This document shows positions 749 to 51,590 of a stretch of 64,000 nucleotides of DNA, one piece after another. Position 1 is the stretch's first letter. Each line of letters opens with the position of its first letter. Location: positions 744,001-808,000 of the forward strand of contig BQFW01000010.1 of assembly GCA_020891255.1 (NCBI GenBank), given 5' to 3'. A model generated the notes under the pieces. The model did no database searches. It was not told the DNA's origin and was given only the letters and a program-made list of their open reading frames with translations. The position numbers and the translations under genes were made by a program. Source of the stretch: Entomortierella parvispora E1425. Lineage: Eukaryota; Fungi; Mortierellomycota.

Positions 749-1257
749 TGTGGTGTTGCTACAATGGGTTGGGGATCGGTCGTAGCTCAAGGAGAGAGGG
801 GCTGGTCACAAGTGATCAAGGGAAAGGGGATTGCTTGCGAGGGGGAGGATAGACGTTGCAGAATCTCACTGTCTAAACTGTGTGAACCAAGTATCAATAA
901 AGATCTCAGTCGGGTGGAAGCTCAAGACTTGTACGAAGGCAAGCTTGATCGGCAGAACAGGGTCTGTGATATCCAAAGGTAAAGGGGGGGGAGGAGGTTA
1001 GACTAGCTACTAATAGTCTCAGCAATCGGAATTAAGGCGTCGATCTTGCTGCTGCTGCAAAGGGGATATCGGGCAGGAAGTGGGGGGGGGGGAATGTGTA
1101 TGTGTTCTGTAACGATCAAACAAAAGCAAACGAAAAAGTAGGGAAGGAAGCGACCCAGAGCAATTACTGCTCTGAACACGAAATTATATTAACGCAATCT
1201 TTTAAGGGTATCTAAACTGACTTCTACAAATGTGTGATCTGTATCTACTACACCACA
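749..1257 (-). repeat. LTR-B (509 bp), 5' LTR
   Basis: TGTGGTGTAGTAGAT…GTAGCAACACCACA termini. Near-identical copies at 15634-16143 and 20994-21717. Confidence 0.9.
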
Positions 1258-1367
1258 GTGGCAATGGTGGCAATGGTTGTAGTTGACCCTTTGTTTGTGG
1301 CTTTGTGAGTGAAGGCGCTGCACGGTCAGTCTGATTTGACTGTTGCACGAGGTCTATTTGTTTGCAC
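1258..1367 (-). repeat. Partial LTR-G, truncated by LTR-B
   Basis: Matches the right half of 37084-37316. Confidence 0.75.
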
Positions 1368-2196
1368 GAGATCTCCAACGGCAAAGTCTGGTTGTGGCTG
1401 GAATCGTTTGTTGTAGTTGCGTTCTTGGTTTTCTTGCGCTGTCTTGATATAGAATTGCAAGTCTTCTTGGATGCGTTTCAGCTCTTGGAGGCGGTCCTTT
1501 GCGAAGGGGCTGCTAGCCGCGACCCGAGGGACGTTGACGCTGAAACGAGGGTGGTAGCCTTGATGAGCAAAGAAGGGAGTTTGCTTTGTGGTTGCTTGCA
1601 CTGAATTGTTGTAACAGAGTTCGGCCATCGGTAAGTGGCTACTCCAGTCGTCCTGTTGATAACTTGTGAAGCAACGAAGATATTGCTCCAGAGTGGCATT
1701 GGTGCGCTCCGTCTGTCCGTCTGTCTGTGGATGATAGTGTCACGGTCGGACAAGGCAGGAACAAGAGAAAGAGGGAAGGTATGGTTTATTGGGAATTGTG
1801 AATTGCAGACTGGGGAATACAGCTATGAATCAAGGGGGTTTTTATACTAGAGAGAGGTGCGGGCCTGGACCTTGTCTGCGTTGTGTCAGGGAGGGCGCCG
1901 GGAAGTATAATCATAAGCTCGACCTATGAGTTGGGTCGTAGATGGCGACAACGGTGATGAAGGAGGAGATGGAGGTCCAAATGGGTGCAGCCGACGGATA
2001 TATATCAATGATAGATAGAACATCCGAAGTCTAGACCCTGGAGGACTCCAATGGGTTTGACCCTAGATCCTAGGTTCGGATCCTTTATCAAGCAAGACGC
2101 GTTCCGACAATGGGTGGAATGGAGTGACCAATTGGTGCCCAGCACGGCACGTGACAGATCGCGGCTGATATCTGACGGTTCGTGACAATCCTCCCC

Positions 2197-5100
2197 CTAG
2201 GAGCGAGCTCCGCGAGCGACTGGGGATGGACTTGGCTTGAGTGGGAAGCGAGAGTGGAAGCCGGCAACAAGTTCTGGCGAGTTCTCTGTGTTGACTGCAG
2301 GTTGCCATTCCGGATCTGGGTAACCTTTGAATTTGACCAAATACCAAAGTTGTTTTCCTCGAAATTTAGAGTCCCAAATCTCCTCAACTTCGAATTCGTC
2401 ATTACCATCGATCTCGATAGCGGGAGGTGGTGGGGCTGTGCGACCAGGTATTGTGTTGGCACGATAAGGCTCCAGGAGAGAGACGTGAAAAACTGGATGA
2501 AGACGAGACATAGTGGGCGGAAGCTGAAGGCGAACCGATCTAGTGTTGACTAGCTCGGTAATCTTGAATGGACCCAAATTCTTGACATCCAATTTACTGG
2601 AGGGTCGGGTGGTCTTGATGTTTGTGCGCTTTAACATGACGAGATCTCCAACGGCAAAGTCTGGTTGTGGCTGGAATCGTTTGTTGTAGTTGCGTTCTTG
2701 GTTTTCTTGCGCTGTCTTGATATAGAATTGCAAGTCTTCTTGGATGCGTTTCAGCTCTTGGAGGCGGTCCTTTGCGAAGGGGCTGCTAGCCGCGACCCGA
2801 GGGACGTTGACGCTGAAACGAGGGTGGTAGCCTTGATGAGCAAAGAAGGGAGTTTGCTTTGTGGTTGCTTGCACTGAATTGTTGTAACAGAGTTCGGCCA
2901 TCGGTAAGTGGCTACTCCAGTCGTCCTGTTGATAACTTGTGAAGCAACGAAGATATTGCTCCAGAGTGGCATTGGTGCGCTCCGTCTGTCCGTCTGTCTG
3001 TGGATGATAGGCTGTTGATAGATTTTGAGTGATTCCTAGCGCTTCCATTGCTGACTGCATGAAGGAAGAGGTGAAGACAGAGCCTCGGTCGGATACGATA
3101 TCATCGGGTAGTCCGTGGTAGGCAAAGACTCGAGATAGGAACAGATCTAAAGTGTCGCTTGCGGTGACATCATCTGTGGTTGGGATGAAGTGTGCCATTT
3201 TCGTGAGACGATCGACGACGACCAGAATAGCGGTGTAACCTTTGGAGTCAGGTAGCTGGACAATAAAATCCATTGATATTGAGGACCAGGGGCTTTCAGG
3301 GATCGGTAGCGATTGCAGTAGTCCGAAAGGCTTGTGATGAGAAGTTTTGTTTCGTTGGCAGGTATCACAGGTCAACACAAAAGACTTGACGAAGTCTCTC
3401 ATACGGGGCCAGTAGTAGGTGCGACTCACAAGCTCGAAAGTCTTTGTGATTCCACCATGACCGGCGGCAGGATCATCGTGGCAGCTTGAGAGGATATCTC
3501 GCTGGAGGGTCTTGTCGTCAGGAACCATAATTCGGCCGTTAAAAAATAACACTTCGTCATCGAGGCGGTAGTCAGGGTTGAGATCGGAATTCTCTCGCAT
3601 TTGATCCAAGACCTCCTTGATGGTATCATCCTCTTGGTAGCCTTGTCTAATACGATCGATAAGGTCTTCAGCGTTCTCGACTCGAAGTACTTCGTCGATT
3701 TCTGCGACTGTGAGTGAACGGAGCGAGATCGGCATCGGCAAGATGGCGTCGCACACTGGACCCTCCTCCCCTTCAGGAGTATGCATACGGGAGAGAGCGT
3801 CGGCAGCGCCATTATGGACACCAGGGCGATAAGCAAGTACAACCTTAAACTTGGACAGGCGTTCGGCATAGCGGATCTGGCGCTCACTTAGAGCCCGCTT
3901 CTCAGAGAAGTACTCGAGGTTCTTGTGGTCTGTAAGGACAAGAGCAGGGTGTTCAGAGTAGGCAAAATAATGGCGCCAGTGCTCCAGACCCTCGATTACA
4001 GCCAATAACTCGGTGTCATGGATATGATAATTCCGCTCCGGCGGCGTCAGAGACCGAGAGAGGAAAGCAACCGGATGAAGCACACCCTTATCATCAGGCT
4101 GGCTACACACATTGCCGAGAGCAAACTTGGAGGCATCTGGTTCCAAAACACAAGGACGAGAGGGATCAAAGTGAACCAACATTGGTTCAGAACAAAACGC
4201 GAGTTTGAGGGCCCCAAACGCGGCTTGAGCGGCAGAGTCCCACTTGAAGGGGACGTCTTTCTTAAGGTAGCGTGTCATTGGTCCCACTAACTTTGAGAAA
4301 TTCTTGATGAAGCGACGATAGAAATTGGCAAAACCAAGGAAGACCTGGATATCTCGAACACAGGTGGGAACAGCCCAAGAGGTGATGACAGCGACCTTGG
4401 CAGGATCCATGGAGACCCCTTCAGGCGAGATAACGTAGCCAAGGAACTCCACTTTTTCAACACCAAACTCGCACTTTTCAAGGTTGACTTGAAGCTGAGC
4501 ATCAGACAGGAGTTGCAAGACACGGCGTACATCGGCAGTGTGAGTTGCCTTATCTTGAGAGTAAATCAGGATGTCGTCCAGGTAAATGACCACGACTGTG
4601 TCCAAACATTCACGTAAGACATCGTTGAGAAAGGCTTGGAACGTAGCGGGGGCGTTACAAAGACCAAAGGGCATGACCAGGAACTCAAAATGGCCATAAC
4701 GCGTCCTAAACGCCGTTTTCCATTCGTGTCCTTTGGCAATGCGGATTAAATTATATGCACCCTTCAGATCGAGCTTGGTAAAGATCTTTGCCTTTCGGAG
4801 ACGCTCCAAGGTCTCTGAGATGAGCGGCAAGGGGCATCGGTTCTTGATAGTTAACTTGTTGAGTGCGCGATAGTCCACACACATACGCAACTCGTTATTT
4901 TTCTTGGGTACAAAGAGGACAGGAGCGCCGGCAGGGGATTCAGAGTGGCGGATGAAACCTTTTTTCAAGTTATCGTCAAGGAACTCTCGAAGAGCTTCCA
5001 GCTCCTTTTCAGAGAGGTTATACAAGGGACCAAAGGGGGCAGTAGCATCCGGTTCGAGAGGGATCGTGTGATCAAAAGGGCGATGAGGCGGCAGGGTGCC

Positions 5101-5832: not shown

Positions 5833-6935
5833 GAATCTGAACCGTTAAGGCCAGATTCAAAGGAGACCGCAGCGAGACGGGCCTTCTTGGCAGGACAGTC
5901 GCCAGCAAAGTGGTTCTTTCCTCCGCAGTAGAGGCAGAGCTTGTTATCACGGCGACGTTGTTTTTCCTCGGCGGTGATGTGTTTAACACGGACAGAATCA
6001 AGGTCCATGTCACCGGAGGAAGCGGCGGCAGAGGTGGTGGCCATGGCAGTGGGCCTGCGGCCCCAATTGTTGTTGGAGTTTTGGTTGCGATGGCCAAAGC
6101 GTTGGTCGCGGGTGCGCGAGACATGGTTCTGGTAGGCAGTGGAGGCGGCTGCCTGAGCTTCACGAAGGGTCTTGAGGTTGTGCATCTGGGCCGTCAACAG
6201 AGACTTGACGTCGGAGGACAGACCATCCTTGAAACGGGCTAGAAGAGCAGCTTCGTTCCAACCTGACTGAGAGGCAAGAGGTTGGAACTTGGCGATGTAC
6301 TCGGAGACGGTGCCGTTTTGGCGGAGACGGATGAGTCGGTTGTTGACATCGTCGACATGAAGATGATTGCCATACAGATCGTTAAGTATTTCGGTAAAGG
6401 ATAACCAGCTGGTCAAGAAGCCTTGGGTGTCTTCGGCGTGACCAATCACATACGGGGCGAAGAATTCTGCGGGAGTACCATCCATAGACTGTAGGGCCAG
6501 ATTGATCTTGTCAACGTCGGTAACGAACGAACGAGGATGTCTTTTGAAAACAGTACTGAGTTGAGACATAAACTGGAACAGCGACATGCCATTGGGGTCA
6601 CCCTTGAACTTAGTAGTGAGGGCACTCGGAACAGGGACATGGGAGGCGCGGTTGGCCAGGGTGGTCAGAATCTCTTGAAATTGGCGATGAGTTTCTTCCT
6701 GCTGAGACCGGCCTTCAGAGAGGATGTGGAGAGCATCGGTAATGGAGGAGGGCGAGGAAGAGTTCTTGGTGGCCTCGGTCACAGCAGCCATTTGCTGCTG
6801 CAGCAAATCTACGGTGGCCATAGTGGATTGCAAGTGCTGGATAACGACACGAGCATCGATCTCAGGGTTCTCGGCTTGTTCAGCGATGTTGTGCAGGGTG
6901 TAGATACCCTGTTGGTCGTGTTGGTTGTGGTCCAT
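5814..6935 (-). CDS. gag: Gag (family E) with CCHC zinc knuckle
   Basis: 373 aa. Retrotransposon gag region (LRQNGTVSEYIAKF) and CLYCGGKNHFAGDC. Confidence 0.92.
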   Translation of the reverse strand: MDHNQHDQQGIYTLHNIAEQAENPEIDARVVIQHLQSTMATVDLLQQQMAAVTEATKNSSSPSSITDALHILSEGRSQQEETHRQFQEILTTLANRASHVPVPSALTTKFKGDPNGMSLFQFMSQLSTVFKRHPRSFVTDVDKINLALQSMDGTPAEFFAPYVIGHAEDTQGFLTSWLSFTEILNDLYGNHLHVDDVNNRLIRLRQNGTVSEYIAKFQPLASQSGWNEAALLARFKDGLSSDVKSLLTAQMHNLKTLREAQAAASTAYQNHVSRTRDQRFGHRNQNSNNNWGRRPTAMATTSAAASSGDMDLDSVRVKHITAEEKQRRRDNKLCLYCGGKNHFAGDCPAKKARLAAVSFESGLNGSDSENESA

Positions 6936-8371
6936 GGTGACGGGAGTGAAAAAGGAACAGGGAGAAAACAGATTTCGGTGGTGTCAGAAATGTGGAGAAA
7001 TAAGCTTTTTTAAAGATTTCCTGTGCGCGAGCAATGTAAAATTTGCGGGCCAAGAGGAGCAGGAAATGGGCAAGAAAAAAAAAAACGGTGGAGGAACAAG
7101 AAGTCGACCAGTTTACTTCATCAACGCGAATGACCCCGGACGGTGGATTGCGGACAGTAACCCTGGGACAGGTGGACTATTACTAAAAGGGGGTTGCTGC
7201 AAATGGGAGCAGCAAGAAGGAGGGATGTGTCTGGAAGAGGAGGGACAAGGAAACAGGATGTGTAGAGTCTGCAATGTCACGGTCGGACAAGGCAGGAACA
7301 AGAGAAAGAGGGAAGGTATGGTTTATTGGGAATTGTGAATTGCAGACTGGGGAATACAGCTATGAATCAAGGGGGTTTTTATACTAGAGAGAGGTGCGGG
7401 CCTGGACCTTGTCTGCGTTGTGTCAGGGAGGGCGCCGGGAAGTATAATCATAAGCTCGACCTATGAGTTGGGTCGTAGATGGCGACAACGGTGATGAAGG
7501 AGGAGATGGAGGTCCAAATGGGTGCAGCCGACGGATATATATCAATGATAGATAGAACATCCGAAGTCTAGACCCTGGAGGACTCCAATGGGTTTGACCC
7601 TAGATCCTAGGTTCGGATCCTTTATCAAGCAAGACGCGTTCCGACAATGGGTGGAATGGAGTGACCAATTGGTGCCCAGCACGGCACGTGACAGATCGCG
7701 GCTGATATCTGACGGTTCGTGACAGATAGGCCGTTGATAGATTTTGAGTGATTCCTAGCGCTTCCATTGCTGACTGCATGAAGGAAGAGGTGAAGACAGA
7801 GCCTCGGTCGGATACGATATCATCGGGTAGTCCGTGGTAGGCAAAGACTCGAGATAGGAACAGATCTAAAGTGTCGCTTGCGGTGACATCATCTGTGGTT
7901 GGGATGAAATGTGCCATTTTCGTGAGACGATCGACGATGACCAGAATAGCGGTGTAACCTTTGGAGTCAGGTAGCTGGACAATAAAATCCATTGATATTG
8001 AGGACCAGGGGCTTTCAGGGATCGGTAGCGATTGCAGTAGTCCGAAGGCTTGTGATGAGAAGTTTTGTTTCGTTGGCAGGTGTCACAGGTCAACACAAAA
8101 GACTTGACGAAGTCTCTCATACGGGGCCAGTAGTAGGTGCGACTCACAAGCTCGAAAGTCTTTGTGATTCCACCATGACCGGCGGCAGGATCATCGTGGC
8201 AGCTTGAGAGGATATCTCGCTGGAGGGTCTTGTCGTCAGGAACCATAATTCGGCCGTTAAAAAATAACACTTCATCATTGAGGCGGTAGTCAGGGTTGAG
8301 ATCGGGATTCTCTCGCATTTGATCCAAGATCTCCTTGATGGTATCATCCTCTTGGTAGCCTTGTCTAATAC

Positions 8372-11300
8372 TGTCGCATAATTTGGTGGCGCAGCGGCAA
8401 ATGATGCTGCTGGCAGCAAGGCACAGTCACGGAGGCAACGGTCAGGATAATATCCTGACCGGTTCAATAAAACAGAGATCCCTCTCTTATTCTCACTGAC
8501 TCCGTGTGCCATATACTTTTCATTTTTTTCAGTGAAGAGAAGAAGATCTCGCAGGATCAGGAACATAACCGACATTCACAACCGGCATTCACCTCCATTC
8601 AACCGCACTCGTCAGCACTCGACCGATCAACAGCATTTCTTCACTGTCTGCGACGACATTCACCAGCATTGACCTGCATCTCACATTCCGCAAGTTAATT
8701 CCACTCGATTTAACTGAGATCAACTTTGGAACGCCAATTCACCCGTCAATCCGACCCATCCATCTAAACGGAACACAGCATCGCTTTCAGGACCCTTGAA
8801 AGTTACCAAAACACCACTTACTGCACGCAAGCCACCGCTCATGGACTTTGGTGAACTTTTCGACATTCAGTTCATTCCGGCATTAACTCAATTCAGCTGG
8901 GAAAAATTTTTCGCGACATGGGCAAAGTGAATCTCAACTGCAGTTGTTATACCTGTTGCACAAGCCGCCAACGCGCGCGCCACTGCCTCCAACTCTGGAG
9001 AACCCACCAACAATGGCGGAGACTTGGCCACTGTAGCCACACACGAAGGATCCATCACAGAAGAGATGGATGTGGACGAGGAAACCATTCCATCCACCAG
9101 CTCTGGCACCAGAAGTGGACTGACGTTTGAAGGACTACCACCGTCACAGTTGCCATCTATTCCAAGAAAGGATAGTCCTACATCGGTCGTATCAATCACC
9201 AGAGCCTTGGCGGTACCTACCCATACTGCCCTGCCTGACATAACAGATGCGGAAATAGAGGCAGACATTGCGGCAACGTACGCACAGATGGAAGCTACTC
9301 GGCTCACCAATGTAAGACTCCTTTTACATATCTCACGTAACAAAAGAGTCACCCATGCCGGTACAGCTCCCATGGACCTCACACCGGAAACAGACAAGAT
9401 GGAGGAAGAACATAAGCGCAACGAGGACTTCCTCAGCAGTATGGAGCAAACATACAATGCTCTTCACGCAGCTCGCCGCCCTGTACCAGCACAATGGGCA
9501 TATCCAAATCAGTCCACCGTAGACCGTTATCAAGAGCAGGATCGAAGCGCAAGCAACCATGCTCCACAAGCGCGATCTGAGGCAGGATTTCCTGTCAAGC
9601 CTCTATCCACATGGCTTCGATTCGGATCATCAGGATCCCTATCGGCATACGACTGGTGGGCGCACTTCGAACGAGAAATCGCGCCGTATGTGGGGGGAGC
9701 AAATCATAGGAAGTCATGGAGACAAATACCTCCTGTACCTGGTCCACAACGACCACTTTCATGCCAATCTGAAAGAGAAGTTCAAGGCACCCAAGGAGGT
9801 GCTGACAGTGGACTATCTCGAGAGGACGTTCTTCGAGACATGTTTAACAATCGAAGAGCGAGAAAACGCTGTTACCACGCTCACCAAATTTGGACGACTC
9901 GCAGGAGAGCCATATAGTCACTACGCTCATCGGATCGCAAGAGCTACAAAGCTATTCCGAGTACAAGACAACAACGATGTGGTTTTGACTCTGCTCCGAC
10001 AAGGACTTGCATCATCTGAAATGGACACAGTCAACACGCGATTCCAATCGCAATACGTACTGGACAACCCACAAGCAACATCAGTGCCAGACACTCCAAT
10101 TGCTATCGCTGATTTTTGCATCGCACTGGGCAAGCTAACAGGACCAGCTGGAGCTCGCGAAAACTTTAGCGCTCCAGTAATGCCCACCACCAACTCTCAC
10201 GCCGCCAAGGCTGAGTCGAAGCAGATGTGGTGTGATAAATGTAACAAGAACGGCAACCACGTTTCCAAGGACCATATCAGCTGCGACTACTGCAACAAGC
10301 TAGGCCATAAGAAGGACGCCTGCCGTGCGCGCCAGAACGACGAACGACGACGCAATGAACACTCGGAGCGTAGCTCACACAACTCAGACGATCGACAAGA
10401 CCGTTCCCACCGCGGATCAAGCCGCTTCGGGCCATATCAAGCTGACAATCGCCAGCGCAGAGACAACAGGGATAGCCACAACTCTCGTGAGCGCAATTAC
10501 AGTAAGGACCCTCTTCATATACTACGCTCTCGTAAAAATGTGTGGCAAACATACCACGATCTTGATATCAACTTCAACGCACTCACTCTTGCGTCCTACT
10601 CCTCTCAGACTAGAGACATGCCGCCAGTGTCAGATAAAGAATTCATAGAGTCTGTTCACTCCACAGATTCAGTCCTGGCACATGCGGGGAGGGAAAGTAG
10701 AATGTCACAAGACATACCACAGGAGCACATGACAATAAACGATGAGCAATCACACATGTTTGAAACACTTATATACAATGAAATGGGTGACCAGAACGAC
10801 AATGACAAGAGACTTGTAGTACCGATCTACTTCGAAGGCCTTCAATTTGAAGCACTAATTGATTCTGGAGCCACGAAGTCATTCATAGACAAGTCATTAG
10901 TAGAAGCTCTGAAAATTGAGGTCAGCAAAGCACGGGGAAACATCTTCCTCGGGCACAAGAAAATGCATGTAGCAAGAACAGGAGTAACAGAACATATAGA
11001 AGTAGAATGCAATGAACATTCGCTTCTCGCCTCATTTGAACTGTTTGACCTACAATACCCATTTGTCATTGGCATGGACCTATTTAACAAACTAGGGTTC
11101 TCAATCGGAGGCATTGCAGACGGACGAGCAAACGCACAGACTCTGCCAACGCCAACACCAGATGAAAAAGCCATCCGTGTTACCATTGGAAACACCAATC
11201 GAAGAACTTACTGACAAGTTCAAGAAACTCAAAGCACAATTCACGAGTGAAATCCAAGACTCGATAAAGGACAACGCACAGATACCGCTAGACAGCTACT

Positions 11301-14300
11301 GCACTCTACCAGAGATGCACGTGTTCTTGGATGTTCCTGAGGGCACGACTATTTATCGCAGACCAAGGACGTTTGCTGAACAGCAACAGCATATTTTCGA
11401 CGAACAAGTTGACAAATGGCTTAAAGATGGAGTTATCACACTTGCTCCGGCCAACAATCGGCACAATAACACGCTAACTCTCGCGGCCAAGAAAGATCTC
11501 CTCGGCAATAAAACGAAATGGCGGGTTTGCCTAGACCCACGTCCTCTGAACAAATTATTAAAGGATGACAACCATCCAGTACCATTAATATCGGACATCT
11601 TACAACAGATAGGTGGCCACATGATTTATACAACGCTCGATTTGACACAAGCATATCACCGGTTACCTATCGAAGCAGGACATCAACCACTCACTGCATT
11701 CATGCACCGAGGAACTCAATATATGTTCCGACGAGCTCCATTCGGACTTAAGCCACTGTCAAGCATATTCCAACGCGGAATGACACGCATCTTGGGGGAC
11801 TTGCCCTTTGTCCTGGTGTTCATTGACGACATCGTTATTTTCTCCAAGACCAAGGAAGAGCATGCAGCGCACGTCAAGTGTGTAATCGAACGCCTAACAG
11901 AGGCAAAGCTTATTAGCTTATTATCAACCCAGAAAAATCACACTTCTCAACACAGATTGTACTCCTCGGCTTTGTTATCGACTTGGCTGGAAAACGGGTA
12001 GATCCTACCAAGCTAGCCAATATCGACCAGTGGGTTCCACCAACCACAGGCACTCAAATTCAGTCCTACATGGGCACATTCAATTTCTTCCAAGAATTCA
12101 TCCCGCTGTTCAGTACATTGGCAGCGCCACTGGATAAGCTGAGGCATGAAACAAAAGCGTTCAAACTCAATGCAGACGAACTCGATGCTTTCAATACATT
12201 CAAGAAACTGCTAAGCCATGCACCAATCTTGCACTTCCCTGACTTCGGTCTGCCGTTCTACGTCGCCACTGACGCATCCAACGTAGGCATTGCATCGGTC
12301 CTTTACCAGAAAGTCAGGAATGAATCCAAGAAAAAATGGGAGAACAGATACATATCCTTCATGGCACGCTCTCTACAAGACAGAGAACGACGGTATTCAG
12401 CCACACAAAAAGAATTGCTAGGAATCGTGTTTGCACTCACGAAATTCCACTACTACCTCTGGGGAAGACACTTTACACTGTATACAGATCACCGAGCACT
12501 TACGTTCATTCACTCGCAGAAAGAGTTAAACTCCATGCTCACTGGCTGGCATGAAACAATCCTGAGTTATGACTTTACGGTCGAATACCGACCTGGAGTG
12601 ATGAATGTGTTGCCAGATCACTTGTCTAGACTGTTCCCAGCCTCCATCCAGACTCGCTACGACTCCAACCATGGGCACATAGTCAACGCTTACATGCACA
12701 TCATGCAAAACAAAAGACACAATGTTAGAAGTCGTTCATGGCAAAAAGAAGCAGGACGATATATTGTACAAAACCCACGCCCTCGGCCACCTTGGAGCGA
12801 ATGCAATGGTCCGGTCTATACATGCGGAACAATACACATGGCCCCATCTCACAGATGACTGCTTGAATTGGGTTAAGAAATGCTCGGAATGTCAGAAGTA
12901 CAATATTAGTATCAAAGGCTATCATCCATTAAAAGCTATCCACGCAAACCTGCCAGGAGATCATATGGCTATGGATTTAGCGGGACCGTTCAAACTCTCA
13001 AAGAAAGGCAATGAAATCCTTCTTATCGTAGTCGACGTATGCACACGCTTCGTCTTCTTAAGAGCGCTCCCTGATAAACAAGCAAACACTGTCGCTAAAG
13101 CCCTGTTTGATATATTTTGTACCGTTGGCTTTCCTCGCGTTTTACAATCCGATAACGGCAGGGAATTTGTGAACCAAGTCATGCTTGCAATGACCTCTGA
13201 ATTTAACGTTGACCACCGGCTACTTACGCCGTATCACCCTCGAGGAAACGGCGTTGCTGAACGACATGTCAAAGTCGCAGTCGACATCCTCAAGAAAGAA
13301 CATCATCAGAAACAAGATACTTGGGACCTTCATGTACCCATGGCACAGCTTGCAATGAATACAAGAATCGTTGCTCTCCATAATTCATCACCGTTCTCTC
13401 TCTTCTTCGCTCGCAAGGCCAATGGCTTCCAAAATTACTCCAAATCTACCAAGAACGTCATGACCCACAAGCAGCTCTGTGATCGTCTCGCATACATGAC
13501 TGAAATTGTCTTTCCAGCGATTGACAAGAAATCAGAAGAGACTCAAAAGAAAATGATCGCCCGATTCAATGCCACAGTTCTGCATAATGAATTCCCTGAT
13601 GGCGCAAAAGTCATGACACTTGATCCCATCCGCGGTAATAAACTTACGCCACGGTATGAAGGCCCGTACACAGTAGTGCGCCGCACGACCGGTGGATCTT
13701 ATGAGCTCAGAGATGGTACAGGCGAGTCGCTCAGTCGCAACTATGCCCCATCCCAGCTCAAACTCGTACTCGAGGATTTAAATACGCTGCCTATATTCGA
13801 GATCGAGTACATTCTCGACCACCGTCCTCATCCTTCTCGAAAGGGGGGAGTGGGAATACAAAGCAAAATGGGCTGGCTACTCCAAAGATGACTACACTTG
13901 GGAACCTGAAGAAAACTTTATTGAAAAACAATGTATCAGAGAATACTGGCAACTTCTCAAAGAAAATAAGCGACCACAGGATCAAAGATCGAAGAGATAC
14001 CAAACGAGAACGAGGAACTAAAACGCTACTACGCAAAGAAGACCTAACAGGCAAAGAGGTTTTTTACCACATGGTTTTCCTCAAAGACAAGAGGTTTTTC
14101 ACTTTTCCTCAACCATAACATTTTCATAGAGGTTTTATTTTTTACCCTCTCACTGACCAGTAGTGTCAACCCGCGCTTCGCTCTCCATGGGAGGGGAAGT
14201 TCTGTCGCATAATTTGGTGGCGCAGCGGCAAATGATGCTGCTGGCAGCAAGGCACAGTCACGGAGGCAACGGTCAGGATAATATCCTGACCGGTTCAATA

Positions 14301-37316: not shown

Positions 37317-37442
37317 AGTACTGCAATAGGAGTATCGAGGGTGGAGTGGAGACAAGAAGTGAGTTTTATTATATTGCAAGTTTCTAGCTTTTGTAGGTAC
37401 ACATCGCGTGATGTCACCGTATTCCTGTTACACCTTCCCCTT

Positions 37443-40400: not shown

Positions 40401-41259
40401 TGCGAATAAGGGCCAGGAACACCTCCGAGCCGGGCAGGGTTGCCATGGAATGAAAGTGCATGTGTGTGAGGAGGAGTCCTTTGGTGCGGCTTTGGATGTG
40501 ATCGGCCTTGAAGCCGCGGCAGCTCCATTTGACATCGATTCCATTGTGAGTGAAATGAAGATCGTTGGTGCGCCAATTGATGCAAGGGTTAACTTTGGTG
40601 AGCCAGGGTTTGCCAAGGATGAGGTCGTATTTGTTGAGAGGATAGAGAATAGGGTTGAGCGAATCGGAGTAGTCGCTGCGGTTGAGGGTGATGGGGACGG
40701 TGTGTGATGTGAGGGAGGAAGAGCCATTGGGGAGGAGGATGGGGATGGGCAAGCATTCAGTGCGGAGGAGCTGGTGTCGCTTTTGAAAAGACGAACTGAT
40801 AATATTACCTTCTGCACCACCATCAATCAGGATTCTGGCAGCGTGGCCATTGACAGAACCGATGAAAGTGAGCAGTTGGCTCTCTGCCTTTTGGACAGTG
40901 AATTCGTGTAGGCGAATCGCACGACGCTTCAACTTCTTCAACTGACTTTTGGACAGAGGTACACTAGGTGCCGGCGGTACAGCGAGAGGGTCCGGTTCAT
41001 CTGTATCGGAGGATCTAGGTAGAGGAGCGGACAGGGCAACTGGAGCGGGCGAGGCAACAGGTTTTTTGGTTTGGTTTTGGTTTCGGTCCGATAGAACAAC
41101 CAGAGCATCGTGGATGTGAGTTCGCTTGTCATGATTGGAGTCATGTTTCTGAGGTGTAGAATCAAGTGAAGTTTTATTTGAGGTACTTAGCTCAGGGTTG
41201 TTGGCTACAGTTTCGACAACTGGGGTCCGGACCGACCCTAGTTGCCGGAGGCTTTTCCC
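37443..41259 (-). pseudogene. pol: Pol of C (PR-RT-RH-IN-chromodomain), -1 frameshift at GGGAAAA, two single-base breaks
   Basis: LIDGGA, YLDD, TMDF/SDRD/GQTE, chromodomain YEVDEIL…FLVSFKGY…EW. Breaks at ~40345 (C-run) and ~39338. Confidence 0.88.
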
Positions 41260-42158
41260 GAATCAGGGGATTCACCCGCGGTTACTTGATTAATTCCTCG
41301 GCTGCCGTTGCCGTACTTAGGGCAATTGGGACTGATGTGACCCAATTCGCGGCAGCGGAAGCAGCCACCGTTACGTACAAGGTACTCTCGGTCGGCGGCG
41401 GTCAGGGGTGCGGGGCGATCTCGAGAAGGGTTGTTAGTACCGTTGGTGGGGCGGTTCTGTAAGGAGCGGTGAAGGGTGCCGAGTTGCTTGTGGATATTGT
41501 TGAGTTGGATATGAATATTGTCCACTTCCATTGCGTTGGGGTCGGTGATACCAGCAGAGGATCCCGAGGCAGCCAGTGCTTTGGCACCGAGTGATGGGTC
41601 TTCAGTGTGGAAGATACGACCGAACTCCTCCGCGGCCTTAAAGAGTCTGGGCAGATCTATGGTGTCGTTGCCTGCATTAACAATGGCCACTTCCAGCATC
41701 TGGCGAAGCTGAGTAGGTGCACCACTGAGAAAGGCAGTGCGGATAGTATCGTTGAGAACTGCGTTGTCGGCGTAGTAAGACTGGAGGAGTAGGTGGTATT
41801 CACGGGCTTTGGTAATATAGGCCATGACGTTGGAGATGTTCAGTGGCAGTGTCATTTTCATTTGCATTGTGAGGGCGAGAATGTGCTCCTTAAACTTCGC
41901 AGGGCTGAACTCGGCGGCAAGGAGCTCGCTGAAATCCGGGAATGAGGTGTCGGATGGCTTGTTTAAGAGTGCCCACCAGCCGATAACCTCATCGCCGGCA
42001 AAGGCAAGGGTAACCCCGACCTTGCGAGATTCGGCAATTCCAGCGCCATCGAAGAAAAAGGTCATGCGTTTCAGAAAACCGAGAACAGAGAATCCGTCGC
42101 GCTTGCCGTTGAACGGTGTTGGATGAGGGAATTTGAATGACGGTGTCGCGGAGTCCAT
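41238..42158 (-). CDS. gag: Gag (family C)
   Basis: PHPTPFNGKRDG…, CFRCRELGHISPNC knuckle. Confidence 0.9.
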   Translation of the reverse strand: MDSATPSFKFPHPTPFNGKRDGFSVLGFLKRMTFFFDGAGIAESRKVGVTLAFAGDEVIGWWALLNKPSDTSFPDFSELLAAEFSPAKFKEHILALTMQMKMTLPLNISNVMAYITKAREYHLLLQSYYADNAVLNDTIRTAFLSGAPTQLRQMLEVAIVNAGNDTIDLPRLFKAAEEFGRIFHTEDPSLGAKALAASGSSAGITDPNAMEVDNIHIQLNNIHKQLGTLHRSLQNRPTNGTNNPSRDRPAPLTAADREYLVRNGGCFRCRELGHISPNCPKYGNGSRGINQVTAGESPDSGKASGN

Positions 42159-42612
42159 GTTGGGTGAATTGTCGAGGGAGAGTTGATCGAAGAGGGATAC
42201 GAGGGGGTCCAGGGTGTGAGTGTGTCGGAGGGTCAGTGGGTCAGTGAGGTCAGTGGATCGAAAACCTTTGCTACCATGCAATAGGAGTATCGAGGGTGGA
42301 GTGGAGACAAGAAGTGAGTTTTATTATATTGCAAGTTTCTAGCTTTTGTAGGTACACATCGCGTGATGTCACCGTATTCCTGTTACAAGTACAGTGTACA
42401 CCTCCGTCTTTTTTTTTTATCAAGTTTAATATGTATAATATTCGTTTTATTGTGCCTTGCACCCAAAAGTGACCCTCCGATTTTATTCTATTCGGATGCA
42501 GAAACTAATCGGAGTAAAAGTACCATGAGCACAGTCACGTCAAAGTTGAGCGCTGGCGATGAAATAAAAGAGTCTGCAGAGTTTAAAGACAGCTCTGCCA
42601 TTCCTCATTCTC

Positions 42613-43548: not shown

Positions 43549-44351
43549 CACGTTGTGGTGTAGTAGATGTGGAGTCCCGGTCCACATCCATCGGAGTAGA
43601 GATATATTTTCAGTAGCATTTATTATTTTGTTTAGTTTCAGTTTTTTTTTCTATAAAGAAGGGAGCAAAATCCATTTTGCTCCTGGTTGCCTTTTTCCTT
43701 TACGATTCCTGCCAGTACACTTTTGTTGAACCCTTCAGAACACAAACATACATCCCCCCCTTCCTGCCCGATATCCCCTTTGCAGCAGCAGCAAGCTCGA
43801 CGCCTTAATTCCGATTGCTGAGACTATTAGTAGCTAGTCTAAACCTCCTCCCCCCCTTACCTTTGGATATCACAGACCTATTGCGTTCTGTTGATCGACC
43901 TTGTACACTCACAAGTTACGATCTTCCCCGTCCTCGACAAGTCCCGTCAAGAACCTCGGCCAACCAGTTCTCCGTGTCCTTGCTCACTTACGAGTTAGTA
44001 TAGTACCTAGTGTTCGCCTCCGTAGTTGTTTATTCTCCTGTTTGGTTACCATTAGGACGTGCTTAGCTCATTGGTATGTCCTTATTAGTCTCCTTTCAGT
44101 TTCGTTCCTGCTTACATCGTGATCCTGTTGCTCATTCTCCTCCTCCTGTCTATCCAGTTCATTCTCTCGAGATTGTATCTGATCATATAGCAGTGCTGTG
44201 CTTGATCCTTGTGGCACAGAGAGCAAAGTCCCTATCATATGTAAGCAGCGAGCTTTGTTCGTTATTATTCTTTTCGTTATCATTTTCACCTCCAGCCTTT
44301 GCTGACGTTAGACTATACTTACTTTAGACAACATCACACCCGAAGCCAATT

Positions 44352-44367
44352 TGGTGGAGAACCTGGG
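44352..44367 (+). promoter_or_regulatory. PBS (tRNA-Ala-like), 13 nt downstream of the LTR
   Basis: TGGTGGAGAACCTGGG; the same in A1 (35764-35779) and B (721-736). Confidence 0.65.
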
Positions 44368-44442
44368 CAATTACAAGCCCTCCCGTCTGAGATTAAAGAG
44401 AAACTCTTCTTCTTTCCGATATCAACTTGAAACCAGTCTTCA

Positions 44443-45987
44443 TTGGATTCCAACATGTCTCCGCACAGCTCCGATAGTATCTCCGCGGACCGGTCCCCAG
44501 CCGCATCCACTAGCAGCATGGAGAGTAGTGTGCCGGATATGCGTCTAGAAGGAGAGATCCCAGGTCACCTCAAAAACACACCTGAAATGTTTGTAGCCAC
44601 GGACAGAGAGAAATGGCTGATGGAAAGCACCCTTAGCAGGATGGAGAGCATGCTGTTGAACGTGCTGAAGCGTACGGAATTGGCAGCCGCTAATCGCCAT
44701 CCCGAGTACGCCCAAACTGCCGATCCAGGACCAATCCCTGAATCCACTCCCTCGTTACCGACGACTCAGCCGACCAGCCATTTCTCGACCCCTTACAGGC
44801 CCTCTAACTTTGCCGACGGAAGGAGTCGAGAACGACTCGAACGCCCTTGGTCACGTGACGAACGCCCTCATGATCAGTATCGGACGCCTCCCAACGACTT
44901 CCATGGCAAGAAAGAACCTCGTGTATGTTCGGCTGGAAAGTTCAATCCTAAGAAACATAAAGCAGAGGTATGGCTGCATCAGTACCAATTGTGGGCTGGA
45001 ACGCAATTTACCAACATGAACCCACATACGGCCGCCTCTCGTACCATCGAATCGTTTGGAGCATCCATGGGAACAGACGAAACACAGGCATGGTTTGTAT
45101 ACTTTCTCGAAAATAACCGGGAGGTTCGCCCCGAAGGCCTCTACGAGGATTTCCGCAATACCTTCATGTCCGTTCGTGATCAGTTGCTCTCAGGATCCTT
45201 GGCGCAGTTGGACAAGTGCAAGCAGACAAAGAAAGAGTCGGTCCAGGCCTTCAACATCCGTTTTAGGATCCTAAACGAACAATATCAACAGGCTACTCGA
45301 CAAGGACTTGGTGTGTATGATGAAGCAGGCGTACGCAAGGCTTATCTCAAGAACTTGTTCCTTCCTGACATTGCCAAGGAGGTCCATCACCAGAACAAGC
45401 TTGAGGATATGATGGAGGAGGCCCATAAATGCTCTCGCAAGATGTACGAGTTGTATCTGGTACGACATAACGAGGAAACGGACGATACCGATGATGAAAG
45501 CGAGTCCAGCGATGATGACGATGATAAGAACCCGACTGCTAAGGACAAGCAAAAGAAGAAGGACCCGTTAGATGACCGTGGCAAATCTGAATCAAAGGCC
45601 GTCGGCTCCCCGTCCGTGAAACGCGACACCAAATCCTTTACCTCTGCCAAAAACAACTCGACTCAGAAGAATTTAGCTTCCAAGGACGACATCGAAGCTG
45701 TCACTCAGGAGCTGGACCGCCTGAAAATCCTCATCAGTAAGAGTAATCGAGTTACTCCTAGACCGGCTGGACCGCCCACCACTCGGTACTCAGGCGAGAA
45801 GAACCCCATGTCTGAGAGACAGTGTTACAATTGCCAACAGTTGGGACATATAGCCCGAGATTGCCCCGCGCAGAAGACACCTCAAACTTTGTTGGTCGAA
45901 GCCAGGATCGATGAAGGCGCTGGAGTTGAGGATTTCGACGTTCGCTGTTATTTCTTCGGATTTGTTGAAGTCGAAGTGGATTTTTAG
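44443..45987 (+). CDS. gag: Gag (family A), ~510 aa; first ATG at 44455
   Basis: Open ORF with a CCHC knuckle, ending G GAT TTT TAG. Confidence 0.9.
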   Translation: MDSNMSPHSSDSISADRSPAASTSSMESSVPDMRLEGEIPGHLKNTPEMFVATDREKWLMESTLSRMESMLLNVLKRTELAAANRHPEYAQTADPGPIPESTPSLPTTQPTSHFSTPYRPSNFADGRSRERLERPWSRDERPHDQYRTPPNDFHGKKEPRVCSAGKFNPKKHKAEVWLHQYQLWAGTQFTNMNPHTAASRTIESFGASMGTDETQAWFVYFLENNREVRPEGLYEDFRNTFMSVRDQLLSGSLAQLDKCKQTKKESVQAFNIRFRILNEQYQQATRQGLGVYDEAGVRKAYLKNLFLPDIAKEVHHQNKLEDMMEEAHKCSRKMYELYLVRHNEETDDTDDESESSDDDDDKNPTAKDKQKKKDPLDDRGKSESKAVGSPSVKRDTKSFTSAKNNSTQKNLASKDDIEAVTQELDRLKILISKSNRVTPRPAGPPTTRYSGEKNPMSERQCYNCQQLGHIARDCPAQKTPQTLLVEARIDEGAGVEDFDVRCYFFGFVEVEVDF

Positions 45988-48900
45988 AAGGGGACCATGG
46001 AGAGACTCCAAACCATGAACCCCCTGACCCTATCCATGGAGAAAACACAGAAGAAGTAAGCGTACTGGTTGCTACTCGTCCCACTACCCGCAACCCTACC
46101 AGCTCGTTACCGTATGCAAAAGCGCCGCCGCCTCGAGGAGTGCCTCGCCCCAACGCTGCCACCCAAGTCCTGAAAAGACCACCTGCCATGACTACACGTG
46201 TTGGCCCATCTGCCATGTCGCATGTCAAAGCCCTCCAACATGCTGCGGCCAAGGCTCGCTCGATGGATGTCGATCCTCCTCCTCGACGAGAGATGATGAC
46301 CGCAGTGGAGATTCCCATCAAGCCCAAGGAGAGTGTCCCAAGTTCCATTGAAGGTCCATCTGCTGCGGAAAACTTGGCCCGGCTCGAACGAACCATCGCT
46401 GCACAAAGATGCAATCAAGGCAACGAAGGGAATTGAGAGAGATGGGCGAGATAGAGATGGAGGCGGACGACTCAGATGGCGGATTACGAAGGATGATGGT
46501 GCCGCCGAAGGAAAGTCGAAAAGTAATGGAGACAAGAAAAGTGAATGGAGGAAGAGATGATGGAACGAGCATGCGTGCGTCATCGGCCAAGAAGATCACA
46601 TGGGAGGAAAAAGACCAGTCACGGCCACCCTCGCCCGAAAAGAAAAAAGAGAGCAGCAAGAACGACAAAAAAGGGGAGCAAAAGAAAAAAAAAACGGACG
46701 GACCGGATCTTACCCTCGAGTCAGATGAGGCGTTTTTGAAGTCGTTACCCAATCCTATCGTGTTGCAGTTGAAGCAGAAACCTTTTGACATCCGTCAGTG
46801 CTTACGAACCACCAAAGTCGAAGGCTTAACCATCGGGCAACTGATGGAGTTGTCACCCAGCATTAGACGGACTGTACAAGCCTCGCTGAAAACTGTGCCG
46901 CGCGAGGAGCGAGTCCTACTCACTCAAGAATATCCCTCGTTATTACTGGGCGAGTCCGAAATAGAAGAGCTACGTGTTTTTCTGAACCGAGTGGAACGAT
47001 CCAAAACCGACACCCATGGATTCAGAGCTGCCATCATGGGAACCAAGTGCGAGATTTTGTTGGATGGTGGCTCCTGTGTCAATGTTATCCGTCGTGGATT
47101 TCTCGATCAAATCGGGATAACCAACCACACACCTTACTCGTCATTTTCGTTGAAAGGTTTGACTGGAAACGCTGGAGTTGCTGGAGAAGCTCCGGGCGTT
47201 CCTATCGACATTCAAGGTATCATGATTCCAGCGGGCTGCGTGATTGTGGACTCTGTCGACTTCGATATTTTGTTGGGCCGCCCATTTCTCGAGGCTTGCA
47301 GCGGATACACAAATTGGTCTACTGCTATCACTACCTTGCATGTCCAAGGATTCAAGGTCACAATTGATGGTCGCGCCCGCACCCTTCCGATCGTTTCTCG
47401 CGTTGACAACCAAGACGATACGAGTGAATCCGAAGCCGAACTCAGCGAAGACACGTCCGAGGATTCAGGTACCGATAACGAAGCGTCCTCCACCAGCGAA
47501 AAAGAAGATGGGGATGAAGGATACGCCCTCCTTATTCGAAACATCCAGGAAGGGAGGGTAGAGCGCACTACCGTGGAACAACTCAAGCAGGACGATGCCA
47601 AGGGAGACATTGTCAATTGTTGGTTTTTGCAAGCGGTTTTCCCAGAACCCCCTATTCCGGATGGTCGTCAACCTGTATCATGTCTCTCCGTTGTGGATGC
47701 TTCCCACCCGTCACCATCTGCTGAAATCAGTTCTATCTTCGACGCTTCTCCGATCATGGTGAATGACTCCTATGGTTTCCACCTGGAAGCACCACGTTGC
47801 CGAGACCGGTTGACTAACACTCCGGTCATGTTGCTGCCTGGTTTGGAGGAACGATCAGTGTATGTGGGAGACATACCGGAGGTGCATGATAATTTATCAG
47901 AAATTCGACGTATTTTCCAGAAACATGAGGAATGCTTTCCAAAGGAGGGCGAGATGTCAAGGACTCTGAACGCTGATATGTTGGAAGCACCCGCTTCTTT
48001 CCACCTCAAGCCTGGCTCAAAGTTTCCGCGTGCGTACAACAAGAAATATTCACCGGGTCAGATAACCACTTTATGTGAATATCGCGATCAAATGGTCAAG
48101 GCTGGAAAGATGAGGCGATCCAGCTCTCCTGCCTCCTGCAATCCGCTCTTAATACAAAAGAAGGATAACTCCTATCGGGTATGCGTTAATTTCATACCAG
48201 TCAACAAGTTGATTGCACCTATGGCATGGCCGCTACCGGATCCCATCACCGAGATATACAAGTTGCAAGGATGCGAGTTTTTGTCATTTTGGGATTGCAA
48301 AGATGGGTATCTTCAATCACCTATCGCCGAAGACAGTCGCTTCCTCACCGCCGTCGCCTTTCCGGATGGATTATACGAGTATAACGTATTGCCTATGGGA
48401 TTGATCGATTCTATGCAATGGTATACTCGCCACATGGGCGAGGTCTTCAGCACAATCAAGGAACGACTAGGGAATTTCGTGGACGACATGGCTACAGGCG
48501 ACGGCACCTTTCATCTCCATTTCCGCACCGTTGAAGAAGTGCTAGCCCGCATGGATATGTTCAACGGTTCGTTTTCAGGCAAGAAATCGGCGTTCTTTGT
48601 CAAACAGCGCGAGTTCTTGGGAAGGATTGTAGGAGATAGTCGGATCTCTGCGGACCCCAAGAAGCTATTCAAGATGGAATATTGGCCCGTGCCTCAGAAT
48701 GTCACTGAACTACGCGGTTTCGTTGGTTTTGCTTTATTTTTGTGTGATTTCATATCCAACTTTTTCTGCAATGGCTGCCCCATTGTTTCCTCTGTACAAA
48801 TTGCACAAGGATCCAAACGCTTTTGTGGAAAAATGGATGTCAGATCCCAAATATATGAAAGCCTTCCGCGATATTCAGGTTGCTCTGGTCACCGCTCCAG

Positions 48901-50679
48901 TTCTAATTATGATGGACCATAAGAGACCGGTTATTATATCCGCTGACACGTCGGATTTCGCCACAGGGCATGTGGTTGCTCATTGTCTGAACCCAGAAGA
49001 TGACGATCGGATCGATATCAACGTCAAATATCAGCCCATTGTTTTTGGAAGCCGGAAATTATCGGGGGCCGAGTCTCGTTATTTTGCCACGGAGCGCGAA
49101 TTGCTAGGACTAGGGTATTGCCTCGTCAAGCACAGTCATCTGTTAGAAGGGAAGGAGATTCATGTCTTCATCGACCATCGGGCGTTGTTATACATGCATA
49201 ACCTTTCTTCGAGGAGCGCGCGACTCACTCGGTGGACATTAATCATCGCCCAATACCGGGTTACCATTCATCATCGACCCGGGCGGGACATGAAAGACTC
49301 CGATCCTTTATCTCGCATCCATCACAAGAATGTCACTGGGGAGGATCTACCGGACCTTGGGGTGGAGGAAGCCATTGAGATACAAGAAAACAAGAGGTTG
49401 ATGAGCACTTTGCTCATCTCGGAGGACCAAGAGCCATTCGTCTCAATTGTGGCTGCGTTACAAGGAGATCCTTTGACCTATTTGGACAAAAAATTCAAGG
49501 GGCAAAATTATGAGCATGCTACCCAAGTATTTTGTTGCTCAAGGTCGTCTATTCAAGCGCACGCCTGGCGGCATGCCTCGCCAATACGTGCCGCCTGGAG
49601 AAGTATCTAGGGTGTTAGAACGCGCTCATGGATCCACCATCGTCGGGCATCTGGGCGTAGTTTCGACCTATACTCTCATCGCCGAGGGATACTTCTGGCC
49701 TGGGATGTACAAGGACGTTAAGGAACACTTATCCAGCTGTGATGCATGTCAACGGTATCAGGCACGAGACCCCACCCGATATCGTTTCCATCGCATACCT
49801 CCGCCTCGAACTATCTTTGAGACTGTGGGACTAGATGCCGTCGGACCTTTGCCAATGTCCAATGGAAAGAGATTCGTTTTAAACATGGTGGATTATCTCT
49901 CCGGATGGGTTGTGTCCGTTGCATTGTCATCCTTGGCTGGAAACCTAGTCTTGCGAACAGTTGAAAAACATTGGGCGATGCAATATGGCCATCCTAAACG
50001 TATCATCACGGATAATGGATCATCGTTGTCCGCAGGAGTCTTCAAAGCATGGTGTATCAAGCATATGATCGATCTGGATCCAGCTTCTGCATATCATGCA
50101 CAGACCAACGGAATGGTAGAGCGGTATAATGGTTTCATGGTGCGTCAAATGGCCCGTATCATCCAGCACGATGGATTACCAGAGAATGCGTGGGCTACCA
50201 TTCTGGATCGTGTTACCTGGACTTGGAGGACCCAGATCAAACAGACCCGGGGGGTTTCACCGTTCGAGATCCTTTTTGGGCAACGAGCCCGCCTTCCCTG
50301 GGATATCGATCTTAACCACAACATGGACTTGGAAGAACGTGAAGAGGTGGATGAGGAGAGACGGGAAATCTTGGGAGTTTTACGCGCGGAGGTTCATCAA
50401 AGGATCATAAATGAGCACAAATGGTCCACCGATGCAGCCGACCTCCCTCCCCCTCGACAGTACGAAGTTGGAGATGAGGTACTAGTACATCAATCCGCGC
50501 TTCTCAAGCAGTGGAGCGGTAAGCTCTCACCCAGATGGAAGGGACCTTACGTTATTGTTGAAGCTTTGCCCGGAGGAGCCTATCGATTGAGTGAAAAGAT
50601 CGATGGACAATGGCATCGATATTATGGAGGTCGACCCGTTAATCACAGTCGCCTTAGACCGTATAAACGAACGACCTAG
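45978..50679 (+). pseudogene. pol: Pol of A2 (long linker-PR-RT-RH-IN), with homopolymer frameshifts
   Basis: ORFs 46140, 46409-48922, 48699-49610 and 49510-50679 concatenate into one Ty3 pol that ends without a chromodomain. Confidence 0.88.
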
Positions 50680-51590
50680 TAGGATATGGGGATCAGCCCA
50701 CCAGAGACACTCACTGGCTTGCTCTCACATAGGAGGATGTGAGAAAGAGACCCTGGGATCGGTGTGGTGTAGTAGATGTGGAGTCCCGGTCCACATCCAT
50801 CGGAGTAGAGATATATTTTCAGTAGCATTTATTATTTTGTTTAGTTTCAGTTTTTTTTCTATAAAGAAGGGAGCAAAACCCATTTTGCTCCTGGTTGCCT
50901 TTTTCCTTTACGATTCCTGCCAGTACACTTTTGTTGAACCCTTCAGAACACAAACATACATCCCCCCCTTCCTGCCCGATATCCCCTTTGCAGCAGCAGC
51001 AAGCTCGACGCCTTAATTCCGATTGCTGAGACTATTAGTAGCTAGTCTAAACCTCCTCCCCCCCTTACCTTTGGATATCACAGACCTATTGCGTTCTGTT
51101 GATCGACCTTGTACACTCACAAGTTACGATCTTCCCCGTCCTCGACAAGTCCCGTCAAGAACCTCGGCCAACCAGTTCTCCGTGTCCTTGCTCACTTACG
51201 AGTTAGTATAGTACCTAGTGTTCGCCTCCGTAGTTGTTTATTCTCCTGTTTGGTTACCATTAGGACGTGCTTAGCTCATTGGTATGTCCTTATTAGTCTC
51301 CTTTCAGTTTCGTTCCTGCTTACATCGTGATCCTGTTGCTCATTCTCCTCCTCCTGTCTATCCAGTTCATTCTCTCGAGATTGTATCTGATCATATAGCA
51401 GTGCTGTGCTTGATCCTTGTGGCACAGAGAGCAAAGTCCCTATCATATGTAAGCAGCGAGCTTTGTTCGTTATTATTCTTTTCGTTATCATTTTCACCTC
51501 CAGCCTTTGCTGACGTTAGACTATACTTACTTTAGACAACATCACAACGTTTATTGCTGGATCAAGTGTAAATAAAGTCAATGCTCCAAT

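Follow-up and report, generated by a model that had tools for sequence, protein, structure and literature searches.

Integrases of retroviruses and of long terminal repeat (LTR) retrotransposons with TG...CA ends are regarded as weakly selective for local sequence. A Ty3/gypsy family that departs from this pattern is found in a 64,000-nucleotide stretch of the fungus Entomortierella parvispora (assembly GCA_020891255.1, contig BQFW01000010.1, positions 744,001 to 808,000), referred to here as the window. This family, A, inserts with a 4-bp target-site duplication (TSD) whose consensus is V-C-G-B, and non-coding elements named C carry the same signature.

The closest known parallels to such a target site come from retroviruses and insects. 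Prototype foamy virus integrase makes 4-bp TSDs with the weak consensus KWK\VYRBMWM, disfavouring T at TSD position 0 and A at +3; in its complex the central pyrimidine-purine (YR) step is bent and unstacked; retroviral central YR use is up ~63% over a 22% background (PMC4422553). Within Ty3/gypsy, every family of the Drosophila gypsy group has a 4-bp TSD, mostly at AT-rich motifs (PMC3276498). Errantiviruses target TATA (gypsy), ATAT (Idefix group) or CGCG (ZAM group), and this specificity has been called exclusive to them, strict target motifs having been described so far for insect errantiviruses alone (PMC5408687).

The analysis covered the window and 37 other loci from its genome, a Nanopore and Illumina assembly of 38.7 Mb in 19 contigs (PMC8759367). 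Members of the A integrase cluster and the gag of a chromovirus, family G, served as locus handles. One locus (L001, BQFW01000010.1) is identical to window positions 39510-60679, and the merged set amounts to 727,860 non-redundant bases in 27 pieces (~728 kb). Self-comparison, by which the window families were found, revealed a nest of LTR retrotransposons, and LTR tips were defined by aligning copies to each other. Long LTRs (785-1070 bp) of the autonomous family begin with TGTGGTGTAGTAGAT and end with ACATCACA; the 510-bp LTRs of C share the 5' tip TGTGGTGTAGTAGAT and end with GCAACACCACA. A search with 60-nt LTR tips located 108 tips, 81 of them facing host DNA. Internal junctions (the polypurine-tract junction, ...GATCGG followed by TG, and CA followed by CCCGAA) were spotted and left out of the target-site counts, and single ends with the same 12-nt flank were collapsed, which kept 41 single ends. 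In the 4-mer background, 5.0% have a central CG.

A first-pass annotation of the window had proposed a 4-bp, CpG-centered TSD from one intact insertion, A2, and from 13 outer LTR ends assigned to families A and B. The signature is indeed common to both groups, but they are not two autonomous families; they are autonomous A and its non-coding partner C. The element and the ends are as follows.

43554 to 51546, plus strand: A2, autonomous A-family Ty3/gypsy element, LTRs 43554-44338 and 50763-51546, the pair 99.7% identical
43550 to 43553, no strand: left copy of the A2 TSD, ACGT, matching the other flank
51547 to 51550, no strand: right copy of the A2 TSD, ACGT, matching the other flank
44352 to 44369, plus strand: sequence resembling a primer-binding site (PBS), TGGTGGAGAACCTGGGCA, TGG-initiated, 13 nt past the 5' LTR
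Outer-end 4-mers, plus strand: 1258 GTGG, 15630 CCGC, 16144 CGCA, 17643 ACGG, 18685 CCAG, 18744 GCGT, 19787 ACGG
Outer-end 4-mers, plus strand, continued: 20990 ACGC, 21718 ACGT, 28307 CTGT, 36833 ACGG, 43550 ACGT, 51547 ACGT

All 13 4-mers read exactly as first listed, with nine CG centers, three CA/TG and one that is neither (GC), and the ACGT/ACGT duplication of A2 was confirmed as the sole window insertion with matching flanks. Eight of 12 independent window ends are CG-centered against the 5.0% background (p = 1.6e-8). The wider sample extends both parts of the proposal. The TSD is 4 bp long in each of the 19 insertions whose flanks match, and all of these but A2 lie outside the window. 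A2 alone is ambiguous, since its flanks could also be read as a 5-bp ACGTT, and this candidate was rejected as no 5-bp reading is consistent over the 19 insertions. These perfect TSDs belong to eight full-length elements and 11 solo LTRs, and 18 of them are CG-centered.

4-bp TSDs, 19 insertions: ACGT four times, CCGC three, CCGG three, GCGG three, ACGC two, CCGT two, ACGG one, CCAG one

The 41 single ends comprise 28 with a CG center, 12 with CA/TG and one with GC. Over all independent events the CG center is found in 46 of 60 (p about 1e-47 against 5.0%), and outside the window in 39 of 49 (17/18 TSDs and 22/31 single ends; p about 1e-41). The bias had been suspected to be specific to CG rather than to any flexible YR step, and the counts agree: CG is enriched 15-fold and CA/TG 1.5-fold, and TA is used in 0 of 60 events. 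Among YR-centered sites CG makes up 78% versus 22% expected (p = 5e-20). Centers other than YR occur in one of 60 events versus 77% of the background, the remaining 59 being YR. Base counts for the 79 half-sites, taken outward from either LTR tip, are given below.

Half-site position 1: A 28, C 31, G 18, T 2
Half-site position 2: A 0, C 73, G 1, T 5
Half-site position 3: A 9, C 1, G 69, T 0
Half-site position 4: A 3, C 14, G 32, T 30

The half-site consensus is V-C-G-B, with further weak preferences at positions 5-7. TSD positions 2 and 3 hold 1.6 and 1.4 bits of information, and the 4-bp target ~3 bits. The same DNA and the same analysis supply a control in chromovirus G, for which 31 exact 5-bp TSDs were read, three of them containing CG (Fisher p = 1.3e-9). 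TSD length, motif and family specificity of A are direct observations. Two 5-bp families lie in the window.

37322 to 42387, minus strand: chromovirus G, 111-bp LTRs, 5-bp TSD AGTAC (37317-37321 and 42388-42392)
8372 to 14353, plus strand: Ty3/gypsy family D, 151-bp LTRs, 5-bp TSD AATAC (8367-8371 and 14354-14358)

The earlier statement that chromodomain families in this DNA make 5-bp TSDs stands for G. Family D also makes 5-bp TSDs, yet no chromodomain was found in it by Pfam, so TSD length does not depend on a chromodomain being present.

Whether the flanking 4-mers represent target DNA can be read from the repeats that were hit. The remaining A and C insertions of the window are listed here with their flanks.

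1 to 1257, minus strand: 5' part of a C element, non-coding interior 1-748 and 510-bp 5' LTR 749-1257
15634 to 16143, minus strand: C solo LTR in chromovirus copy E2, left flank CCGC (15630-15633), right flank CGCA (16144-16147)
17647 to 18684, plus strand: solo long LTR, 5' flank ACGG (17643-17646) in E2, 3' flank CCAG (18685-18688) in a fragment of a C' LTR
18748 to 19786, minus strand: solo long LTR that faces the one above, flanked by GCGT (18744-18747) and ACGG (19787-19790) as read on the plus strand
20994 to 21717, plus strand: C' solo LTR, a 724-bp variant, 5' flank ACGC in a D fragment, 3' flank ACGT not D sequence
28311 to 36832, minus strand: second full-length A copy, LTRs 28311-29374 and 35793-36832, 96.3% identical

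Empty paralogous sites were found for several of these flanks: ACGG at E1 6327-6330, ACGC at D1 13046-13049, and the G LTR with ...CCTGT running directly into TACA. Likewise, the 63 bp between the facing solo LTRs (18685-18747) are 100% identical to C' LTR positions 21217-21279, so that CCAG and GCGT, 55 bp apart, sit in a single uninterrupted stretch. Since uninterrupted host copies contain the flank 4-mers, the flanks are target DNA and not element DNA. Two A-family insertions thus struck one short-LTR copy at points 55 bp from each other, and the outer parts of that copy on either side have since disappeared. The facing pair (17647-19786) was considered as one unit with an ACGG TSD and this was rejected, as the DNA past 19790 does not continue E; a shared ACGG is expected by chance in ~1 of 9 cases under the motif. 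The strictness of the motif accounts for the flanks that unrelated insertions have in common (ACGG three times in the window), and any pairing of LTRs by TSD in the Entomortierella parvispora genome must allow for it. Family E itself shows segments repeated at 100% identity in changed order (1366-1737 equal to 2639-3010, 1738-2187 equal to 7275-7724), and the two regions involved (1366-3010 and 7275-8381) either were rearranged recently or are artefacts of the assembly.

Several junctions have a history beyond simple insertion. The flanks of the second full-length copy are unequal (CTGT and ACGG on the plus strand, the left one inside a G LTR), and the copy is therefore a chimera of two insertions. 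Similarly, the 5' flank of the C' solo LTR lies in D and its 3' flank does not, so the two flanks stem from different insertions. The outer flank of the C element at 1-1257, GTGG (1258-1261), falls in a GGTGGCAAT repeat from a different repeat family (compare 37184). The CGCA junction at 16144 is irregular in that 89 bp (16144-16232) of unassigned DNA intervene between the C solo LTR and the resumed E2; CGCA may derive from a CCGC copy that has lost one base. The same 89 bp have AGGAGCGC(C) of the host on both sides, and may mark where a short element had inserted earlier, with a TSD of 8-9 bp. Outside the window, L036 holds inverted 510-bp solo LTRs at 1588-2607 (plus strand) and 4002-4508 (minus strand), the first with another solo LTR nested inside (TSD CCGC). 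Their 5'/3' flanks are TCGG/TCGT and TCGT/TCGG, a swap expected from inversion by recombination between both LTRs; the two original TSDs deduced on this basis are CG-centered. Two target sites were used twice. At TCGG (L036:1588 versus L002:14569) the 5' tip of a short LTR and, in opposite orientation, the 3' tip of a long LTR adjoin host repeat copies that are 99.4% identical, and at CCGT (window 36833 versus L002:3784) the host copies are ~90-94% identical and the LTRs 98.2%. Each of these sites was hit independently in different copies of its host repeat.

The A family has the makeup of a Ty3/gypsy (Metaviridae) element: an upstream gag, the order protease, reverse transcriptase (RT), RNase H and integrase in pol, LTR termini of the TG...CA type (TGTGG...CACA), the PBS-like site, and a purine-rich tract, AGGAGGATGTGAGAAAGAGA, directly before the 3' LTR. 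In A2, Pfam identifies a gag with a zinc knuckle (zf-CCHC) followed by protease, RT, RNase H and integrase, with pol broken across three reading frames; the integrase has a zinc-binding domain, a catalytic core and a weak murine leukemia virus (MLV)-type C-terminal domain. Two other copies (P0104 and P0105) retain an unbroken gag-pol of 1,968 amino acids, in which P0105 matches Peptidase_A2B (754-841), RVT_1 (1128-1285), RT_RNaseH (1382-1495), Integrase_H2C2 (1606-1664) and rve (1692-1775). The claim that A has no chromodomain held up, since Pfam finds no Chromo match in the A2 integrase open reading frame (ORF) or in intact P0105 and the same scan detects Chromo in the pol of E and G. There is also no space for a third (env) ORF, as the A2 integrase ORF stops 84 nt short of the 3' LTR. 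Full-length copies have LTR pairs that are 98.1-99.9% identical. A is a young Ty3/gypsy family of ~8-8.5 kb that has been active recently and is probably still active.

The PBS-like TGGTGGAGAACCTGGGCA is common to A2, to the C elements and to more distant relatives with ~55% pol identity (L039:149, L040:1119 and L041:6711, from a sequencing-run assembly and a Joint Genome Institute (JGI) metagenome). In the relatives it lies 9-11 nt past LTR ends reading ...CATCACA or ...CACCACA, and the PBS and LTR-tip cis signals are thus conserved across a wider clade. Each of these contigs has a single collapsed LTR without flanks, which makes the TSD unreadable.

C elements lack gag and pol. When free of nested insertions, C measures ~2.57 kb, and its interior of 1,547 bp has a longest ORF of 104 amino acids and gave no tblastx match to A. 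The interior matches A solely in the 31 nt that directly follow the LTR, including TGGTGGAGAACCTGGGCA, and at the polypurine end, CTGGGATCGG. The LTR bodies of C and A have diverged around a core of ~167 bp that keeps ~89% identity, and LTR tips, PBS-like site and polypurine end are common to both. CG-centered events number 25 of 34 for autonomous A and 21 of 26 for C. Because C shares these cis signals and the target signature with A, it is most likely the A integrase that inserts C in trans. One composite (L007:14-7645) at first resembled a chromovirus with a 4-bp TSD, since it seemed to encode a pol with a chromodomain and just 24% identity to that of A. This candidate was rejected because the pol belongs to a nested G element (L007:810-5874, 99.9% identical to the window G). 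A second C composite (BQFW01000002.1, ~2223738-2231373) arose from an independent G insertion at another position. G entered the interior in one C element (TSD GAATC) and the 5' LTR in the other (TSD TCTAA), the composites measuring 7,632 and 7,636 bp.

The distribution of the family in the genome raises a separate question. All A and C LTR tips lie in ~10 islands of transposable elements (TEs), one per sampled contig and two of them at contig ends; the 16 remaining pieces, 350 kb of sequence surrounding dispersed G copies, yielded none. The first-pass annotation had suggested that a CpG preference, possibly for methylated DNA, gives A a second route into silenced chromatin. The base composition lends this no support. 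CpG density is 49.5 per kb in pieces with A or C elements versus 50.7 in pieces without, VCGB density is 22.8 versus 23.6 per kb, and CpG observed/expected is ~0.82 for TE islands and gene-rich loci alike. As motif density is equal in both classes of piece, the motif cannot cause the restriction to TE islands, which belongs to a distinct level of targeting or selection. Within islands, 62 of the 81 flanks (77%) are repetitive versus 345 of 400 random VCGB sites (86%). NDC10_II-domain genes were noted near islands (L004:3941-4587 and L014:2217-4634), and the islands might be centromeric.

Our best explanation, to which we assign a probability of about 80%, is that the A integrase complex uses a 4-bp stagger with a near-exclusive choice of V-C-G-B sites and also serves the C partner in trans. 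The complex would cut the target with a 4-bp stagger, accept V-C-G-B almost exclusively with the choice made per half-site, and read the central bases itself rather than only sensing how readily the DNA bends. C elements, with their A-like tips, PBS and polypurine end, would be carried along by the same integrase. Direct reading of bases by the complex is most likely, ahead of flexibility alone, because C is preferred over T ~15 to 1 per half-site and TA, the step with the greatest flexibility, does not occur at all. Among solved integrases, prototype foamy virus is nearest in sequence (E = 4e-23), followed by Ty3 (1e-18). Where foamy virus has Ala188 the aligned A integrase has Ser, and the A integrase C-terminal domain has a weak match among solved structures, to the MLV integrase C-terminal domain near RWKGPY (E = 0.18).

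A number of points weigh against this explanation. The base-contact residues known in the foamy virus complex, Ala188 and Arg329, meet the target outside its central pair (PMC4422553), which leaves the C-G requirement without a known contact to explain it. Direct base reading is deduced here from statistics on surviving insertions, all of them taken from one assembly. The sample covers 1.9% of the 38.7-Mb genome and was picked around A-family and G-family genes. Flanks do not match in 13 of 24 solo LTRs; we ascribe this to ectopic LTR-LTR recombination, for which one reciprocal product was found (L036). Finally, since the same sites were used repeatedly, the preferences may well extend past the 4 bp, and the weak signal at positions 5-7 accounts for them only in part.

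One alternative is that the integrase prefers methylated CpG, in which case a CG-centered TSD would record integration into silenced TE chromatin marked by 5-methylcytosine (5mC). The confinement to TE islands despite equal motif density outside does call for something beyond bare sequence, and CpG transitions between near-identical TE copies (24 of 115 differences) run at ~3.4 times the rate of other transitions, a suggestive figure at most. The next-commonest centers, TG and CA, could be read in the same way because T bears the same 5-methyl group as 5mC. However, the CpG observed/expected ratio is as high in the islands as elsewhere and gives no sign of heavier methylation-driven decay there, and 5mC has been reported as near-undetectable or scarce in early-diverging fungi including Mortierellomycota, with exceptions such as Phycomyces (PMC13297926, PMC11258239). 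We consider preference for methylated CpG unlikely. A bolder version, in which the integrase distinguishes the modification of the central CpG (5mC, or hemimethylated after replication), would unify site choice with restriction to one TE island per contig, possibly a centromeric one. We hold it to be distinctly improbable; if true, it would mean an LTR element without a chromodomain reading DNA methylation in place of histone marks. For the regional restriction, tethering or selection is at least as likely as methylation.

Tethering could also be asked to explain the motif itself, with the central CG as the footprint of a host CpG-binding or chromatin protein of TE islands that holds the integrase. 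Restriction to islands calls for a regional factor of some kind, and tethering is the rule for Ty1, Ty3, Ty5, Tf1, MLV and HIV (human immunodeficiency virus) (PMC5408687). Tethers usually yield a window of positions, though, not a single-base register, and here CG is fixed at TSD positions 2-3 with V and B placed symmetrically around it, a register that agrees with the dyad geometry known from integrase complexes such as that of foamy virus, with its VYRB (PMC4422553). We accordingly consider it very unlikely that the motif stems from a tether. The pattern might, lastly, be produced by misplaced LTR borders, by flanks derived from the element, or by selective retention of CG-centered insertions. 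Surviving insertions of one assembly were all that was read, and the 16144 junction is irregular. Such an origin is nevertheless hardly credible given eight different TSD 4-mers, flanks that match uninterrupted paralogous copies of host repeats, the recognition and exclusion of the internal polypurine-tract and CA junctions, and the lack of CG bias in family G under the same analysis; nor is any selective reason known for keeping CG-centered insertions.

Some neighboring genes deserve mention. ORFs for DDE_3 (Tc1/mariner type) transposases at 19721-20602 (plus strand) and 51594-52478 (minus strand) adjoin the right flanks of the solo LTR ending at 19786 and of A2, which places A2 beside a transposon. 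A 624-amino-acid gene with a Cas12f1-like_TNB domain (TnpB/Fanzor-like; L014:14991-17038) adjoins a G element, and dispersed G copies (L021, L034, L020 and L030) lie beside genes with NACHT/NB-ARC domains, resembling NOD-like receptors (NLR-like), and Crinkler domains.

The A family offers a tractable system for studying how integrase complexes read central target base pairs. Two intact coding copies, a non-coding partner as a possible reporter and an unbiased related control family are all at hand as experimental material, and a contribution of DNA modification could be tested cheaply with them. In comparison to fungal chromoviruses (Tf1/MAGGY type, represented here by G and E), A belongs to the same superfamily and is nested together with them in the TE islands of the same genome. 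Unlike A, chromoviruses carry a chromodomain, and G makes 5-bp TSDs without CG bias and is dispersed next to genes. C recalls large retrotransposon derivatives (LARD) and terminal-repeat retrotransposons in miniature (TRIM) in being non-coding, in having cis signals in common with an autonomous element and in sharing its TSD length and motif; it differs in that the LTR bodies of C and A have diverged, and its mobilization by A in trans is what the shared signals suggest.

Like Drosophila errantiviruses and their two-ORF derivatives, A is a Ty3/gypsy family with a 4-bp TSD and a high-information palindromic motif. The ZAM group likewise has a GC-rich target, and it is located in heterochromatin (PMC5408687, PMC3276498), although the center of its CGCG is GC and that of the A motif is CG. 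Errantiviruses also have AGT...AnT ends and often an env ORF (PMC5408687), whereas A has TG...CA ends and no third ORF, and its host is an early-diverging fungus rather than Drosophila. With the integrases of foamy virus and gammaretroviruses, A shares the 4-bp stagger, the symmetric target and the central YR, and as in foamy virus T is disfavoured in the first TSD position and A in the fourth. Retroviral integrases show a weak preference, in contrast to A sites, of which 59/60 are YR-centered and 46/60 CG, with C over T ~15 to 1 at base 2; V-C-G-B is a strict subset of the foamy virus VYRB. A is a 4-bp-stagger, VYRB-type integrase system with an unusually strict C-G requirement and ordinary TG...CA ends.

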